Source of the DNA: Amoeboaphelidium protococcarum X5
Lineage: Eukaryota; Fungi; Aphelidiomycota
Assembly: GCA_023515725.1 (NCBI GenBank)
Contig: JALDTO010000251.1
Span: forward strand, 248,001-312,000
Length of the DNA stretch: 64,000 nt
Direction: 5' to 3'
The translations under genes were made by a program, and so were the position numbers. The notes beneath the pieces are model-generated. The model had not been told where the DNA came from, searched no databases, and worked only from the letters and a program-made list of their open reading frames with translations. Positions 14,149 through 20,149 of the stretch are shown in pieces. Position 1 is the stretch's first letter. Every line of letters starts with the position of its first letter.

Positions 14149-14221
14149 CGCCCAGTAGCGGGCTCGAACCGCTGACCTAATGATTAAGAGTCATTCGCTC
14201 TACCGACTGAGCCAACCGGGG
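14149..14221 (-). tRNA. tRNA-Lys(CTT)
   Basis: Cloverleaf CCCCGGT TG GCTC AGTCGGTA GAGC G AATGA CTCTTAA TCATT AGGTC AGCGG TTCGAGC CCGCT ACTGGGC G, followed by a TTTCCTTTTT Pol III terminator. C1:C72 mismatch. Confidence 0.9.
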
Positions 14222-14249
14222 TATTCAGGTATTTCCTTACTACGATGGA

Positions 14250-14547
14250 TGTTAGCACACGCGTCGATCAAGTATCAACAGAAGACTCTATGGGGCTTAG
14301 ATGATCAACATTGTTTCAAGTGCGCGCCTCTTTCATCAATTAGATCTCGAATAGGCAAGTATCTGCAGTATATATGCGCGCCTCTTATGAACATTGATTT
14401 CTTCCACTTAACGTGTTAATTAGAGTATTTATCTTATTAACATATTTTATCTTCCCGTATTTCTGTTAGTGTCTCTGCTTGACTCCTAGTCCTTGTATAT
14501 AACTTCCTGTCTGTTCCTATTGTGTATATAATCTGTCCTAAGTTAAA
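14250..14547 (+). repeat. 5' LTR
   Basis: TGTTAGCAC...CCTAAGTTAAA; matches the copies at 19301 and 19604. Confidence 0.95.
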
Positions 14548-14567
14548 ACTTAACACGTTCTGATATT

Positions 14568-15527
14568 ATGAGTGGTTCTGGTTCCTAAACTCCTGCCGTT
14601 GATGTTAATCAGTTGATGTTGATTAATCAACAACTCCAGTAACAGATACAATATTTATCTGATTAAATGCAATAATTGTAAACGCATGTTGCTTAGACCG
14701 CTGTGCCGCCTGCTATACCTCTGGTCGCCCCGACTTCATAGAAGAAGCAAATAATATATCCTGAAAAGTTTGATGGATCTGTGTCGGAGTTCCGTTCGTT
14801 TGTAAATTAGTGCTAACTCATGTTTGAGTTACATCCGGACGCCTTTGCCACTGACGACATTAAGATTAAGACTGTTGGATCGCTTCTGACTAAGAAAGCC
14901 AGCAAGTACTACGACCCTATTATTGAGAATCCCTCTCAGTATAAAGAAGAGTTGAAGTCCTTTGACACCTTCATCGCGTGTTTCAAGGAGTGGTTGTGTC
15001 CAGCTAGCCAAAGAGACTGCGATGAGAAAGCTCTGAGAAGACTAAAGTAAGGCTCAATGACGGTTTCCGCCTATGCGGCAGAGTTTAGATTCCTGTCGTC
15101 TGGAATAGGGTGGAATGATATCTCGCTGAAGTCCGAATTTAAAGAAGGACTTAACAATGATGTACGCATAATGATGTTGTCCTCTGATGAGCCTAGTACA
15201 CTAAGTGATCTGGTGAAACTTGCAATCCGTTGTGGTGAACGAGTTGCTGACATGAAAGCTTTAAGCGGTGGTAGTAACTACTCTAAGAAGTAGTATTCAT
15301 CTGTCAGGTCTTCCTCCACTTAGTCGGCCTCTGCTTCTACCAATTCGTCTGCCTCTACTCCTGGCCCTCCTAATCCAGATAATATGGATATTGATCAAGT
15401 TAAGCGTGGGCCGTTGTCCGCAGAGGAGCGTCAGCGTCGTTTGTCTTAGAGACTGTGTCTATATTGTGGTGGCTCTGGTCATATCAAGGCTAATTGCTCG
15501 TTATTGAATACTCGTACTTAAGGATGA
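14568..15527 (+). CDS. gag: Retrotransposon Gag (capsid plus CCHC zinc knuckle)
   Basis: ATG 14568; PEKFDG, TVSAYAAEFRFL, PDNMDID, CLYCGGSGHIKANC; in-frame TGA at 15525-15527. Confidence 0.9.
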
Positions 15528-18500
15528 CTAACTGAGAAATATATTTTAAGTCTGAATTATGAGGTCTCTACTAAAATGATCCTTCCCACAGTCTTAAAAT
15601 ATGGAGCTAAAGAAATTTCTGTCCCTATGCTTTTAGATTCAGGCGCTGATAGTTGCTTTTTAGATGAAAGTTTAGTGGCCGAGTTCGAAATTCCTGTAGT
15701 GAAATGCAAGCGTAAAGTCTGTGTATCCTTTGCTGATGGTGACCGTAATACTAAGACCTTTATTACTCATCAAACTGTTCCGCTGTAAATGCATATAGCT
15801 AATCATATTGAGACGGTCACATTCTACGTTATAAAACTTGCTCAAAAGGGAATTATTGGTTTCTCATGGTTAAGAATGCATAATCCTGATATTGATTGGT
15901 CAGCTGTGACTGTAAAATTTGGTTCATAGTACTGTTTAACTAATTGCGTAACCTCGCCGGAGTTAATATCATTGTAGCCCGATTAAGTATCAGACCTCTA
16001 GTCCAGTTCCGTTAGTGATCTTTCTGTCTCTGCTGATCATAAGTCTGTCTCTGTCTCCGACCATGTCTCTGTTTCTACTGTTGCTGATAATAAGTCTGTC
16101 TCTGTCTCCGAACATGTCTCTGTTTCTACTGTTGTTGATTCTGTTTCTGATTCTAACTCTGCCTCTGTCTCTACTCTGCCTGTTACTTTAACTGAGTCTA
16201 CTACTATTAACGCTTCTACTTCTGTTTCTGACTCCATCTCTACTCCGCCTCTTGTTTGCATTAATGCCACTGTATTAGACATGTATTAGAAGGACGAAGA
16301 GAATACCATAATTCCAGGATTTGTCTATGAGGATGAAGATGGAATCATAAATTATCATTGCCTATCAGATATCATTCAAGAGTAGATTTGCTTAATGTAA
16401 AAGGATACTGAAATAAGTGATCCTGTTCTTCCTGACCAGATACAAGAGTTTGGCGATGTATTTATGAAGCAACAGCTGAATGAGCTTCCACCTCATCGTG
16501 AATAAGACTGCACTATAGATTTAGAGCCTGGGGCTAAACCTCCTGTTGGTAAGTTGTACAAACTGACTTAGGAAGAAGATGCTGTCATGCGCGACTGGCT
16601 GTAGAAGAATGTGGATCGTGGATTTATTCGCAAGAGTTAATCACCATATGGTGCTCCCTGCTTCTTCGTCCGTAAGGCTGAGTGGACATAGGATTCCAAG
16701 TTGCGTCTCTGCATGGACTATCGCGGTCTGAACAAGATCACTATCAAGAATCGGAATCCTCTACCTAACATTTCTGATCTATTCCGCTCTCTTTAAAAAG
16801 GAAAGTTGTTTACTGCATTGGACCTGGATGGTGCCTTTGAGCTTTTGCGTGTCAAAGCTGGTCATGAAGCTAAAACCGCATTTCTCACCAAGTATGGCTA
16901 GTACGAATTTCTGGTGATGCCCTTTGGATTGGCTAACGCTCCTGCTTAATTTCAAACATTCATGAATGATCTGTTTAAGAATTAGATTGGCAAATTTGTT
17001 GTGGTGTATCTGGATGACATTGTTGTATATACTGATGGTGATGAAGAGGAACATTGGTAACATGTACGCGAAGTTTTGTAGATTCTCCGTTGTAACAAGC
17101 TCTACTGCAAACTGTCAAAGTGCAAGTTTGCGTAATCCTCCACGTCTTTCCTAGGTTATATTCTTTCTAAAGATGGCATTCTCATGGATCCTAGAAAAGT
17201 CGAAGCTGTTACTCAATGGCCAACGCCAAAGAATGTAAAGGATGTGATGATGTTCCACGGCTTTGTGAATTTCTACCGTAAATTTATTCCGCACTTTGCA
17301 GATCTGACGCGTCCTCTGACTTAACTACTGAAGAAGGATGTTGCTTTTACTTGGGATGCTGAGAAGTAGCATGCATTTGATTCACTAAAGAAGATGTTTA
17401 ATAGTAATATTGTACTAAGTCATCCGGATGAAGAGAAGCCTTTCGTGGTCGAAGCAGATGCGTCTGATTATGGCATTGCTGGTGTATTGTCTTAGTAGTC
17501 TGACTCTGGAGAGTTCAAACCTGTCGCCTTCTATTCAAGATAACTCAATCCTGCTGAGCGTAATTATGAGATCTATGACAAGGAATTACTGGCAATTCAT
17601 CAATGCTTCAAAGAATGGCGCCACTTTCTGCAAGGTGGTAAGCATCAAGTAACAGTCTTGACTGATCATAAGAGTTTGCAATATTTTATGACCACAAAGC
17701 AACTGACAAGGAGATAGGCGCGATGGTCTCTATTCTTCTCTGAATTTGATTTTGTCTTGACACATCGTCCTGGTGCCAGAAATGGTAAAGCTGATCTGCT
17801 CTCTAGACGCTCAGATTATGCGGTTGACGAAGAGAAGTACAATTTCAGATGCTTGTTAGATCCTTCAAAGTTTGTGACTCCGTAAGAGTTGGATCTGTTT
17901 TCCATATCCTTTGACCAAGATCTGTAATGTCAGCTGATCAGAAGTGATGTGCTCAATAAGGAATTTGATGAAGAGCATGACTGGCCTCTGGTAATTGCGC
18001 ATTTCCTGTTGACGGACGAATGGCTGGATGTATCTAGTGACATATTGGACAAATGTAAGTAAGAGTGTCAACATTTCATCATGGTGCATGGAAAGTTGCA
18101 CAGAATTCTGGCTGATAATAGATCGAAGAGACCTTACTTGCTGAAGTCTGATAGAGATGCTCATATAGCTCGATTCCATGATGGGCTTGGTCATTTTAAG
18201 TATGATTCCATAGTTGATCTCATTGAACGCCGTTTCTGGTGGCCTGACATGCATGCCGACATCAAGTAGTATATTAAAGAGTGTGCGCAATGCTAACTTG
18301 ATGCTTCCAAGAATTAGTTCACGTAATAGACTCCTCTGCGTCCTATTCCTCCCGTTGCCCTCCCATTCGAGAGATGGGGTATCGACTTTGTTCAGGATCT
18401 GTAAACGACTAAATCTGGTAATAATCACATCATTACCGCCATTGATTACGCTACTCGTTGGGTGGTTGCTAAAGCTGTGAAGTTTAGAGATTCTGATACT

Positions 18501-19355
18501 GTTGCAGATTTCCTCTACAATGATATCTTTATGAATTACGGTGCACCTTATGAGATCTTGTCTGATAGAGCGAAGTCATTCTTAGCTGATGGTATAGCGA
18601 AATATGAAAGAATGCAAGGCGTTAGACCAATTGCTACTGCACCTTATCACCCTTAAACTAATGGTATGGTAGAGAGAATGCATTCTATGCTCAATCACGC
18701 GATAACTACTTTAACTAATGGGCGTCCGGAAAGATGGGACGAGTATCTGAAGCAGGCTTTGTTTGGAATACGCTGTCGAACTCATGCAGTGACCAAGAAG
18801 TCACCATTCTACATGCTTTATGGTGTGGAGCCTCGTTTACTAGGTGATTCACGTCCTCCTGAGTGCACTTTGCAGCCGTTGGATGAGATTGAATAACTTG
18901 AGGAGAAAGGAGAAATTATGGCAAGAACTTTTGAAGCTATGGGAGATTCCAGAGCTGCTGCATATGAGAGATCTAAGACTTAGGCTGAAAGTATGAGAAG
19001 ACGTCACAATCTTGATCCGAATGCTCCAGAATATTACTTCAAGATTGGTGATTGGGTCAAATTAAAGCATCATAGCATGAATAAGTTTGAGTTCGATTGG
19101 AAGGGACCATATCATGTTGTCGACGTTGGATTTCCCGGTACTTACTGGTTGATGTCACCTGATGGAACACGATTTGATGCTACAGTTAATGAAAGAGATC
19201 TTGCTCCTTTTCTGGCAGCTACTGAAAAGAATAAGGACTACTTTTATGATGGATCTTCAAGGAGTTCTGTGAATCAGCTGCCATTTAGAGAGGGGGGTAG
19301 TGTTAGCACACGCGTCGATCAAGTATCAACAGAAGACTCTATGGGGCTTAGATGA
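15528..19355 (+). CDS. pol: Retrotransposon Pol (protease, RT, RNase H, integrase), same frame as gag
   Basis: LLDSGA (PR); [26 protein letters not shown] (RT); [17 protein letters not shown] (RH); HDGLGH...CAQC, WGIDFV, ILSDRA, YHPQTNGMVER, WKGPY (IN). Stop TGA lies inside the 3' LTR. Confidence 0.92.
16032..16133 (+). repeat. 51-bp tandem duplication in the Ser/Val/Thr-rich PR-RT spacer
   Basis: Two units encoding [17 protein letters not shown] and [17 protein letters not shown]. Confidence 0.85.
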
Positions 19356-19598
19356 TCAACATTGTTTCAAGTGCGCGCCTCTTTCATCAATTAGATCTCG
19401 AATAGGCAAGTATCTGCAGTATATATGCGCGCCTCTTATGAACATTGATTTCTTCCACTTAACGTGTTAATTAGAGTATTTATCTTATTAACATATTTTA
19501 TCTTCCCGTATTTCTGTTAGTGTCTCTGCTTGACTCCTAGTCCTTGTATATAACTTCCTGTCTGTTCCTATTGTGTATATAATCTGTCCTAAGTTAAA
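19301..19598 (+). repeat. 3' LTR
   Basis: Same sequence as the 5' LTR; preceded by the PPT. Confidence 0.95.
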
Positions 19599-19603
19599 AT
19601 GGA

Positions 19604-19901
19604 TGTTAGCACACGCGTCGATCAAGTATCAACAGAAGACTCTATGGGGCTTAGATGATCAACATTGTTTCAAGTGCGCGCCTCTTTCATCAATTAGATC
19701 TCGAATAGGCAAGTATCTGCAGTATATATGCGCGCCTCTTATGAACATTGATTTCTTCCACTTAACGTGTTAATTAGAGTATTTATCTTATTAACATATT
19801 TTATCTTCCCGTATTTCTGTTAGTGTCTCTGCTTGACTCCTAGTCCTTGTATATAACTTCCTGTCTGTTCCTATTGTGTATATAATCTGTCCTAAGTTAA
19901 A
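19604..19901 (+). repeat. Third, tandem solo LTR flanked by ATGGA on both sides
   Basis: Same LTR sequence; ATGGA at 19599-19603 and 19902-19906. Confidence 0.93.
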
Positions 19902-19908
19902 ATGGAGG

Positions 19909-20149
19909 TTCTACTTAGCACAGACTATATACGCAGTAGAAACAGACGGGACGCAATATGCAAAGATTGAGAGTCGAGCAGAGACAATAACAGAAGTACA
20001 GAAAGATAAAATGTGTTAATAAGATAAATACTCTATTAACACGTTAAGTGAAAGAAATCAATGTTCATAAGAGTCGCGCACTTGAAACAATGTTGAGCGC
20101 CACAGAGAGCCAGCTGTTGATACTTGATCGACGCTTGTGCTTGCTTACA
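19909..20149 (-). repeat. Degenerate solo LTR of a related family, inverted
   Basis: Reverse complement reads TGTAAG...gcgtcgatcaagtatcaacag...caacattgtttcaagtgcgcg...tcttatgaacattgatttc...cacttaacgtgttaa...gagtatttatcttattaac..., colinear with the young LTR but with substitutions and internal deletions. Confidence 0.88.

Follow-up and report, generated by a model that had tools for sequence, protein, structure and literature searches.

The tRNA-Lys locus and its stacked long terminal repeats

The locus described here lies in a 64,000-nucleotide stretch of the genome of the aphelid Amoeboaphelidium protococcarum X5 (contig JALDTO010000251.1, positions 248,001 to 312,000), hereafter called the window, and consists of a Ty3/gypsy retrotransposon and additional long terminal repeats (LTRs) inserted next to a tRNA-Lys(CTT) gene, the sole tRNA gene that ARAGORN detects in this 64 kb. 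The element is on the plus strand, divergent from the minus-strand tRNA gene, and the gap between the 5' end of the tRNA and the first LTR is 28 bases (14222-14249), the last four of which are TGGA. The overall order is LTR-gag/pol-LTR-LTR, and the three direct 299-bp LTRs are 100% identical by both a repeat finder and alignment (Table 1). The coordinates agree with those of the original prediction, made from the window alone, which described three LTRs and a divergent element starting 28 bp from the tRNA-Lys 5' end. Beyond the coordinates of that prediction lies an inverted LTR (19907-20149), a paralogous copy of which is found next to a tRNA-Lys gene on contig C207. Outward from the tRNA gene, the stack thus comprises a full-length copy, a solo LTR and the diverged inverted LTR, which is the oldest layer.

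The target-site duplication had been read as the pentamer ATGGA. This sequence is indeed present three times, but its first A may be the last base of the LTR, and the 5-bp length is probably incorrect. In sister copies whose LTRs end in GTATCA, the duplication is perfect only as 4 bp (the full-length copy on C146, L014, L015 and L007). Because these four sister-subfamily insertions are perfect only at this length, the duplication in the window is most likely the 4-bp TGGA, with the A of ATGGA representing the final base of the LTR.

Table 1. Features of the tRNA-Lys locus, in window coordinates.
Feature	Position	Strand	Evidence or remarks
tRNA-Lys(CTT) gene, RNA polymerase III (Pol III) target	14149..14221	-	ARAGORN; Rfam tRNA match at the same genome place
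Leader between target site and mature tRNA 5' end	14222..14245	-	Conserved among the tRNA-Lys genes of the genome (compared with L055, L056, L082)
Target-site duplication copy 1, TGGA	14246..14249	.	TCCA in tRNA sense, on the start-like motif TCCATC
5' LTR (LTR1), 299 bp	14250..14548	+	First bases TGTTAGC, last GTTAAAA
Probable self-primer at start of R, 10 nt	14410..14419	+	Complementary to the primer-binding site; inside LTR1
Primer-binding site, putative Tf1/Tj1 self-priming type	14550..14559	+	One base past the LTR
gag	14568..15527	+	Closes with TGA 15525-15527; Cys-His knuckle near the end
pol, protease-reverse transcriptase-RNase H-integrase	15528..19355	+	Integrase with zinc-binding, core and GPY/F C-terminal domains; ends within LTR2; Pfam on stop-free pieces and frame analysis
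51-nt tandem repeats	16031..16177	+	Ser/Val-rich linker between protease and reverse transcriptase; repeat finder
Polypurine tract	19287..19300	+	Also found ahead of the 3' LTR of every full-length copy
3' LTR (LTR2)	19301..19599	+	Identical to LTR1
Target-site duplication copy 2, TGGA	19600..19603	.	Separates LTR2 from LTR3
Solo LTR (LTR3)	19604..19902	+	Same sequence as LTR1 and LTR2; interpreted as what is left of an earlier insertion
Target-site duplication copy 3, TGGA	19903..19906	.	
Older inverted LTR, same superfamily	19907..20149	-	Adjoins the third TGGA; blocks of 82-96% identity, gaps of 54 nt and 6 nt

The acceptor stem of the window tRNA-Lys(CTT) contains a C1:C72 mismatch. The paralogue on C207 also has C1, and two other tRNA-Lys(CTT) genes begin with G.

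Insertion upstream of Pol III genes

When the LTR was searched against the whole assembly (23.6 Mb, about 40% GC, with many genes in pairs that are about 90% alike), 46 matches were obtained, which resolved to about 36 sites. The flanks of these sites were searched for Rfam families and, using ARAGORN both with introns allowed and without, for tRNA genes. At 27 of the roughly 36 sites, the 5' end of a tRNA or 5S rRNA gene faces the LTR within 45 bp, and the LTR may be in either orientation. Four further sites are at the start of a repeated unit of 350 nt, one is 260 bp from a tRNA gene, and the remaining four have nothing nearby or are at a contig end. The five full-length copies of the element adjoin genes for tRNA-Lys, tRNA-Gln, tRNA-Gly, tRNA-Pro and 5S rRNA.

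A reverse test, in which genes were chosen without regard to LTRs, gave the same picture. Among 63 Rfam tRNA hits (about 57 of them nuclear), for each of which 900 bp of upstream sequence was inspected, the LTR of the window family was present 14-42 bp upstream of 10 of the nuclear genes. The only other LTR matches in these 900-bp regions were the far LTR of a neighboring element and one weak match. The two surveys concur with the proposal in the original prediction of a tRNA-targeting gypsy family with nucleotide-level specificity.

The distance between the insertion and the gene depends on the kind of gene. It is close to -13 for most tRNAs (-11 to -16), -28 to -30 for tRNA-Lys and -3 to +1 for 5S genes, the 5' end of which is abutted by three LTR sites of the window family and one of a second LTR family, called B. 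The single peak at -23 to -33 that had been anticipated gives way to a distance that varies by gene and tracks the probable transcription start.

Family B has LTRs of about 235 bp (TGATAC...GTATCA; L007, L015, L020, L100). Like the window family, it sits directly at Pol III starts in either orientation, and within stacks it is usually the outer, older layer.

Two other observations were made during these searches. A signal recognition particle (SRP) RNA gene (Rfam Protozoa_SRP, 76.7 bits; L114, G000 C264:281559-281791) is 444 bp from an LTR fragment and does not abut it. Contig C346 of G000 (28 kb) carries a cluster of tRNA genes at short intervals in AT-rich sequence and probably represents the mitochondrial genome.

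A shared motif at the probable transcription start

In the sense of the gene, TTCATC or a close variant stands ahead of many tRNA genes, of the 5S genes and of the 350-nt unit. Specifically, (A/T)TTCATC is found 10-30 bp before many mature tRNAs (loci L035-L097; window 14244-14249) and at the 5' end of the 5S gene, where the 5' end defined by Rfam is the A of TTCATC. Judging from this coincidence, the motif is the probable Pol III initiator, or start, of the host. If so, the leaders of tRNA-Lys, tRNA-Gln and tRNA-Asp would be about 18-25 nt long.

The insertions follow this motif closely. Three independent insertions of the window family at 5S genes duplicated TTTC, TTCA and TCAT, which together define a 3-nt window around the Rfam 5S 5' end, and a family B LTR at another 5S gene duplicated TTCA. 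Duplications of TTCA or TCCA occur at no fewer than six independent sites (at least tRNA-Pro, tRNA-Gln, tRNA-Asp, the 350-nt unit and the tRNA-Lys of the window are among them), and three insertions at tRNA-Lys genes are at -28, -29 and -30. Sites without the motif, where AAAT, AAAC, AGTA and GGAA were duplicated, are still 11-16 bp before the mature tRNA. Overall, insertion is tied to the probable transcription start and scatters by about 1 nt, whereas its distance from the mature tRNA is not constant.

The 350-nt unit is present in four copies that are 93-97% alike (L021, G000 C249:551.7 kb; L026, C214:184.4 kb; L027, C69:39.4 kb; L028, C264:291.8 kb). It opens with TTCATCC and holds a B-box-like sequence, GGTTCGAGAC; two of the copies are followed by T-runs. 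An LTR of the window family is located exactly at the start of each copy. Comparison with Rfam at a loose threshold returned only sub-threshold noise (U6atac at 20.8 bits, cut-off 33). The unit could represent a Pol III gene that has escaped annotation, or a short interspersed nuclear element (SINE).

Recurrence of stacks and occurrence of empty sites

The target-LTR-target-LTR-target layout is not limited to the window. The pattern GTATCA-N4-TGATAYKG, in which an LTR end is joined through four bases to the start of a family B LTR, has seven matches in the genome, compared with none for a reversed control. On contig C200, the order is UUA tRNA gene, GGAA, an LTR of the window family (A), GGAA, a family B LTR and GGAA, and the homeologous gene is empty with one TTCC. 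On C192, the order is 5S-TTCA-B LTR-TTCA-B fragment. On C162 and C233 and at the four 350-nt units, an A LTR, four bases and a B-type LTR follow one another, with imperfect outer duplications. A tandem within the sister subfamily, GTATCA-N4-TGTTAGCAC, had no match in the same genome. Stacks of mixed families cannot arise from local duplication or misassembly, which makes such artefacts unlikely as the general cause of the layout. Their recurrence with heterologous LTRs lends support to the idea, put forward in the original prediction, that two separate integrations occurred at one position and that one of them was reduced to a solo LTR. No description of a triple duplication at a Pol III gene was found in the literature searched.

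Unoccupied sites that carry the target only once, which that prediction had called for, are seen in two settings. The C207 paralogue matches the window locus in its tRNA-Lys gene and leader, beyond which come one ATGGA and the equivalent of the old inverted LTR; its right flank is 89% identical over 812 nt. In addition, a 156-nt contig from sequencing run X16, whose label names a different organism, connects 14250 directly with 19908 at the window locus. This contig skips exactly 5657 bases, equal to the whole insert (three LTRs and the internal region) plus one TGGA. It shows no difference over the 99 nt on the right side and one changed base at the joint, and its depth is low, at 4.7. Elsewhere in the genome, the homeologue pairs L038/L039 (tRNA-Gly) and L096/L097 (UUA tRNA) each include one empty and one occupied member.

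Another contig of run X16 leaves the tRNA flank at 14250 and enters a different sequence beginning TGTTAACG. This could reflect a different LTR occupying that place, or else the contig could derive from a paralogous tRNA-Lys gene. More generally, many tRNA genes are paired (L035-L097), with upstream regions that are about 90% alike, and several pairs have one LTR-occupied member. Such pairing fits a duplicated or hybrid genome.

The window element is young and intact. In each of the five full-length copies, gag-TGA-pol forms one frame that is free of any further TGA, and the LTR pairs of these copies differ by 0, 0, 0, 0 and 6 bases. A twin on C158 is 99.6-99.9% identical to the window element but has one more unit of the 51-nt linker repeat (L032).

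Origin of the stack

Based on the current evidence, the locus is best explained by separate insertions of a Ty3/gypsy element that targets Pol III starts, stacked at one tRNA-Lys gene, an interpretation to which a probability of about 0.8 may be assigned. [quoted passage not shown] Initially, one element of the young subfamily would have inserted and duplicated TGGA, and recombination between its LTRs would later have reduced it to a solo LTR. The TGGA closer to the gene would have kept its distance from it, and a second copy of the same subfamily could then have cut and duplicated the same four bases again. Insertion at a fixed distance from the gene would thus yield the order target-new-target-old-target, with the youngest element nearest the gene. 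The expected outcome is tRNA-TGGA-[LTR-gag/pol-LTR]-TGGA-[LTR]-TGGA. The outer inverted LTR would represent a still earlier hit.

Several points weigh against this interpretation or parts of it. The three LTRs are identical, so their divergence cannot order the events, and a 303-bp duplication of one LTR with its TGGA would look the same at the window locus. In some stacks (C162, C233), the third duplications are imperfect. Among the k=31 Logan contigs of four runs, which break at the repeated LTR, none was shown to bridge the LTR2-TGGA-LTR3 junction, and a scan of metagenome contigs for junctions of an LTR end, four bases and an LTR start was blank. The transcription start is deduced from the motif that the genes share and from the 5' end of 5S. 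The tether may also differ from that of Ty3 because the tail of the integrase appears to leave no room for a vestigial chromodomain.

Some of these points are what would be expected from a single integration, in which LTR3 and its TGGA originated as a 303-bp local tandem duplication, through slippage or unequal exchange on microhomology, or as an assembly artefact. The base identity of LTR3 with both other LTRs and the dependence of the LTR2-LTR3 junction on contigs, rather than reads, are compatible with such an event. Nevertheless, it is unlikely. The same layout is formed by two unrelated families on C200 and is seen beside a 5S gene on C192, and the C158 twin was assembled with two LTRs only. 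Contigs of up to 2.5 Mb suggest a long-read assembly, and the re-use of a site that the family hits within about 1 nt is much more probable than exchange on 4-5 bp of homology.

The other explanations concern the targeting itself. Many duplications share the tetramer TTCA, TCCA or TGAA, and newly inserted LTRs frequently lie flush with the terminus of an older one, as would be expected if integration were guided by DNA sequence, through recognition of TTCA/TCCA or of LTR ends, and proximity to Pol III genes were secondary. This is improbable, since a 6-nt motif is expected thousands of times by chance in 23.6 Mb and the copies are almost only at Pol III genes, and since the sites lacking the motif keep their place before the mature tRNA. 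The abutting of older LTRs is itself predicted by a fixed distance from the gene. Still less credible is random integration followed by selection that, in a compact genome, spares only harmless copies near tRNA genes. While the genome is gene-dense and old copies are known to be subject to survivorship bias, selection cannot yield positional agreement of 1-3 nt across tRNA genes, 5S genes and another repeated gene. Moreover, the five youngest copies, with identical or near-identical LTRs, are all at Pol III starts, and the other intergenic DNA that was examined contained no copy. Repeated insertion at the Pol III start remains the preferred explanation of the stack.

Coding region, genetic code and priming

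The internal region of the element contains 53 in-frame stop codons in one frame and no frameshift; 52 of them are TAA or TAG and one is TGA. Decay of the element was considered as the cause of these stops and rejected, given this composition, the absence of frame shifts and the fact that the whole window is alike in this respect. Within the 64 kb, no standard-code open reading frame (ORF) reaches 300 codons, compared with about 25 when only TGA terminates. The genome also carries tRNA genes with UUA and CUA anticodons (L005 and L007 among the loci). Because of these three features, the host is concluded to read TAA and TAG as sense codons throughout the window, and gag-TGA-pol is therefore a single intact frame.

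Pfam searches of the stop-free pieces identified Asp_protease_2 (15528-15785), RT_RNaseH (17544-17714), Integrase_H2C2 (18063-18266) and rve (18405-18653), and the reverse transcriptase motif YLDD is located between the protease and RNase H. The domain order of protease, reverse transcriptase, RNase H and integrase is the arrangement of Ty3/gypsy elements (Metaviridae). Further traits of this group are the direct identical LTRs, the polypurine tract before the 3' LTR and the short target-site duplication. The LTR termini differ between subfamilies: the sister subfamily ends in GTATCA, while the young subfamily of the window ends in GTTAAAA, or AA rather than CA.

At the C-terminus of the integrase there is a weak match to the SH3-like Pfam domain MLVIN_C. 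About 45 poorly conserved residues follow the GPY/F domain, and conservation halts at an FYDG motif. Long homologues of the integrase, which come from metagenome contigs of about 5 kb, stop 5-20 residues after FYDG. A second domain like the vestigial chromodomain of Ty3 was not evident in the sequence after GPY/F. Comparison of the integrase core and RNase H pieces with solved structures gave no matches, the pieces being too short to be informative.

The primer-binding site (14550-14559) is complementary to 14410-14419 at 10 of 10 nt, for which a chance match has a probability of about 3 in 10,000. The columns corresponding to 14410-14419 are invariant across all four aligned LTRs, and a TATA-like run is located about 35 nt upstream. 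The same primer-binding site follows the 5' LTR in the sister copies L009, L017 and L019, and it is conserved in the sister subfamily despite only 75% identity of the leader and gag. By these criteria, the element has the predicted layout of Tf1/Tj1-type self-priming. Each of the five full-length copies has one in-frame TGA between gag and pol, and pol lacks an ATG-led ORF. This is the layout expected for readthrough of the Tj1 or gammaretrovirus type, in a genome where TGA is the only stop codon.

Relationship to known elements and significance

The targeting of Pol III genes by retrotransposons is a textbook case of safe-haven integration in compact genomes. A search of the literature for retrotransposons of aphelids or Amoeboaphelidium returned nothing relevant.

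One close parallel, in shared features, is Tj1 of Schizosaccharomyces japonicus, a self-priming gypsy element with a gag stop codon that inserts 1-10 bp from Pol III starts, including those of 5S genes (PMC4600332). As in Tj1, the element is about 5 kb long with short LTRs, its primer-binding site is complementary to the start of its own transcript, the gag stop codon is followed by an in-frame pol without its own ATG, and insertion occurs within a few bp of Pol III starts at tRNA and 5S genes (PMC4600332). In contrast, the duplication is 4 bp here and 5 bp in Tj1, and both orientations are found here while all 16 mapped Tj1 events are in one (PMC4600332). The LTR of the young subfamily also ends in AA instead of CA, and the host is an aphelid in which TAA and TAG are sense codons. 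More broadly, the element resembles the Tf1/sushi self-priming group, in which a stretch of about 10-11 nt opening R can pair with a primer-binding site directly after the 5' LTR. Tf1 itself differs in targeting Pol II promoters and in having a chromodomain; the window element is at Pol III starts and has no evident chromodomain.

Ty3 of Saccharomyces cerevisiae integrates within a 2-3 bp window at the Pol III start by means of TFIIIB (PMC8632968). The window element shares with it the gypsy order, integration confined to 1-4 bp at the Pol III start and a position upstream of tRNA and 5S genes that leaves the gene intact, but Ty3 is primed by the initiator tRNA, uses a +1 frameshift and generates a 5-bp duplication (PMC8632968, PMC5911963). 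In Ty3, the C-terminal domain of the integrase and the vestigial chromodomain bind TBP/Brf1, and it is this second domain that is not evident in the window element. DGLT-A of Dictyostelium discoideum is also of the gypsy type, inserts in either orientation in a compact genome and is found 13-33 bp upstream of mature tRNAs (PMC5911963, PMC5006619). Unlike the window element, it has a single ORF and no full-length active copies, and its positions are less sharp (PMC5911963, PMC5006619). DGLT-A has been taken as a case of convergent evolution (PMC5911963, PMC5006619).

It is debated whether Pol III targeting arose many times or was inherited (PMC5006619, PMC6101501). A tentative suggestion, which at present seems doubtful, is that the aphelid elements and Tj1 belong to one ancient gypsy lineage of the fungal stem group, characterized by self-priming, stop-codon readthrough and targeting of Pol III starts, which predates the split between Fungi and Aphelida and in which the chromodomain-less tail of the integrase serves as a tether unlike that of Ty3. 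If this were true, Pol III targeting in the Holomycota would have been inherited rather than repeatedly invented.

Both the kind of element and its behavior are already known, and these results extend existing knowledge and introduce no new principle. They add a Pol III-targeting lineage outside the yeasts and dictyostelids, with at least two LTR families and several intact and very young copies. The stacks with their repeated 4-bp duplications provide a natural record of the repeated use of one site. Moreover, the TTCATC motif, being common to tRNA genes, 5S genes and the 350-nt unit, could help to annotate Pol III genes in this little-studied group.

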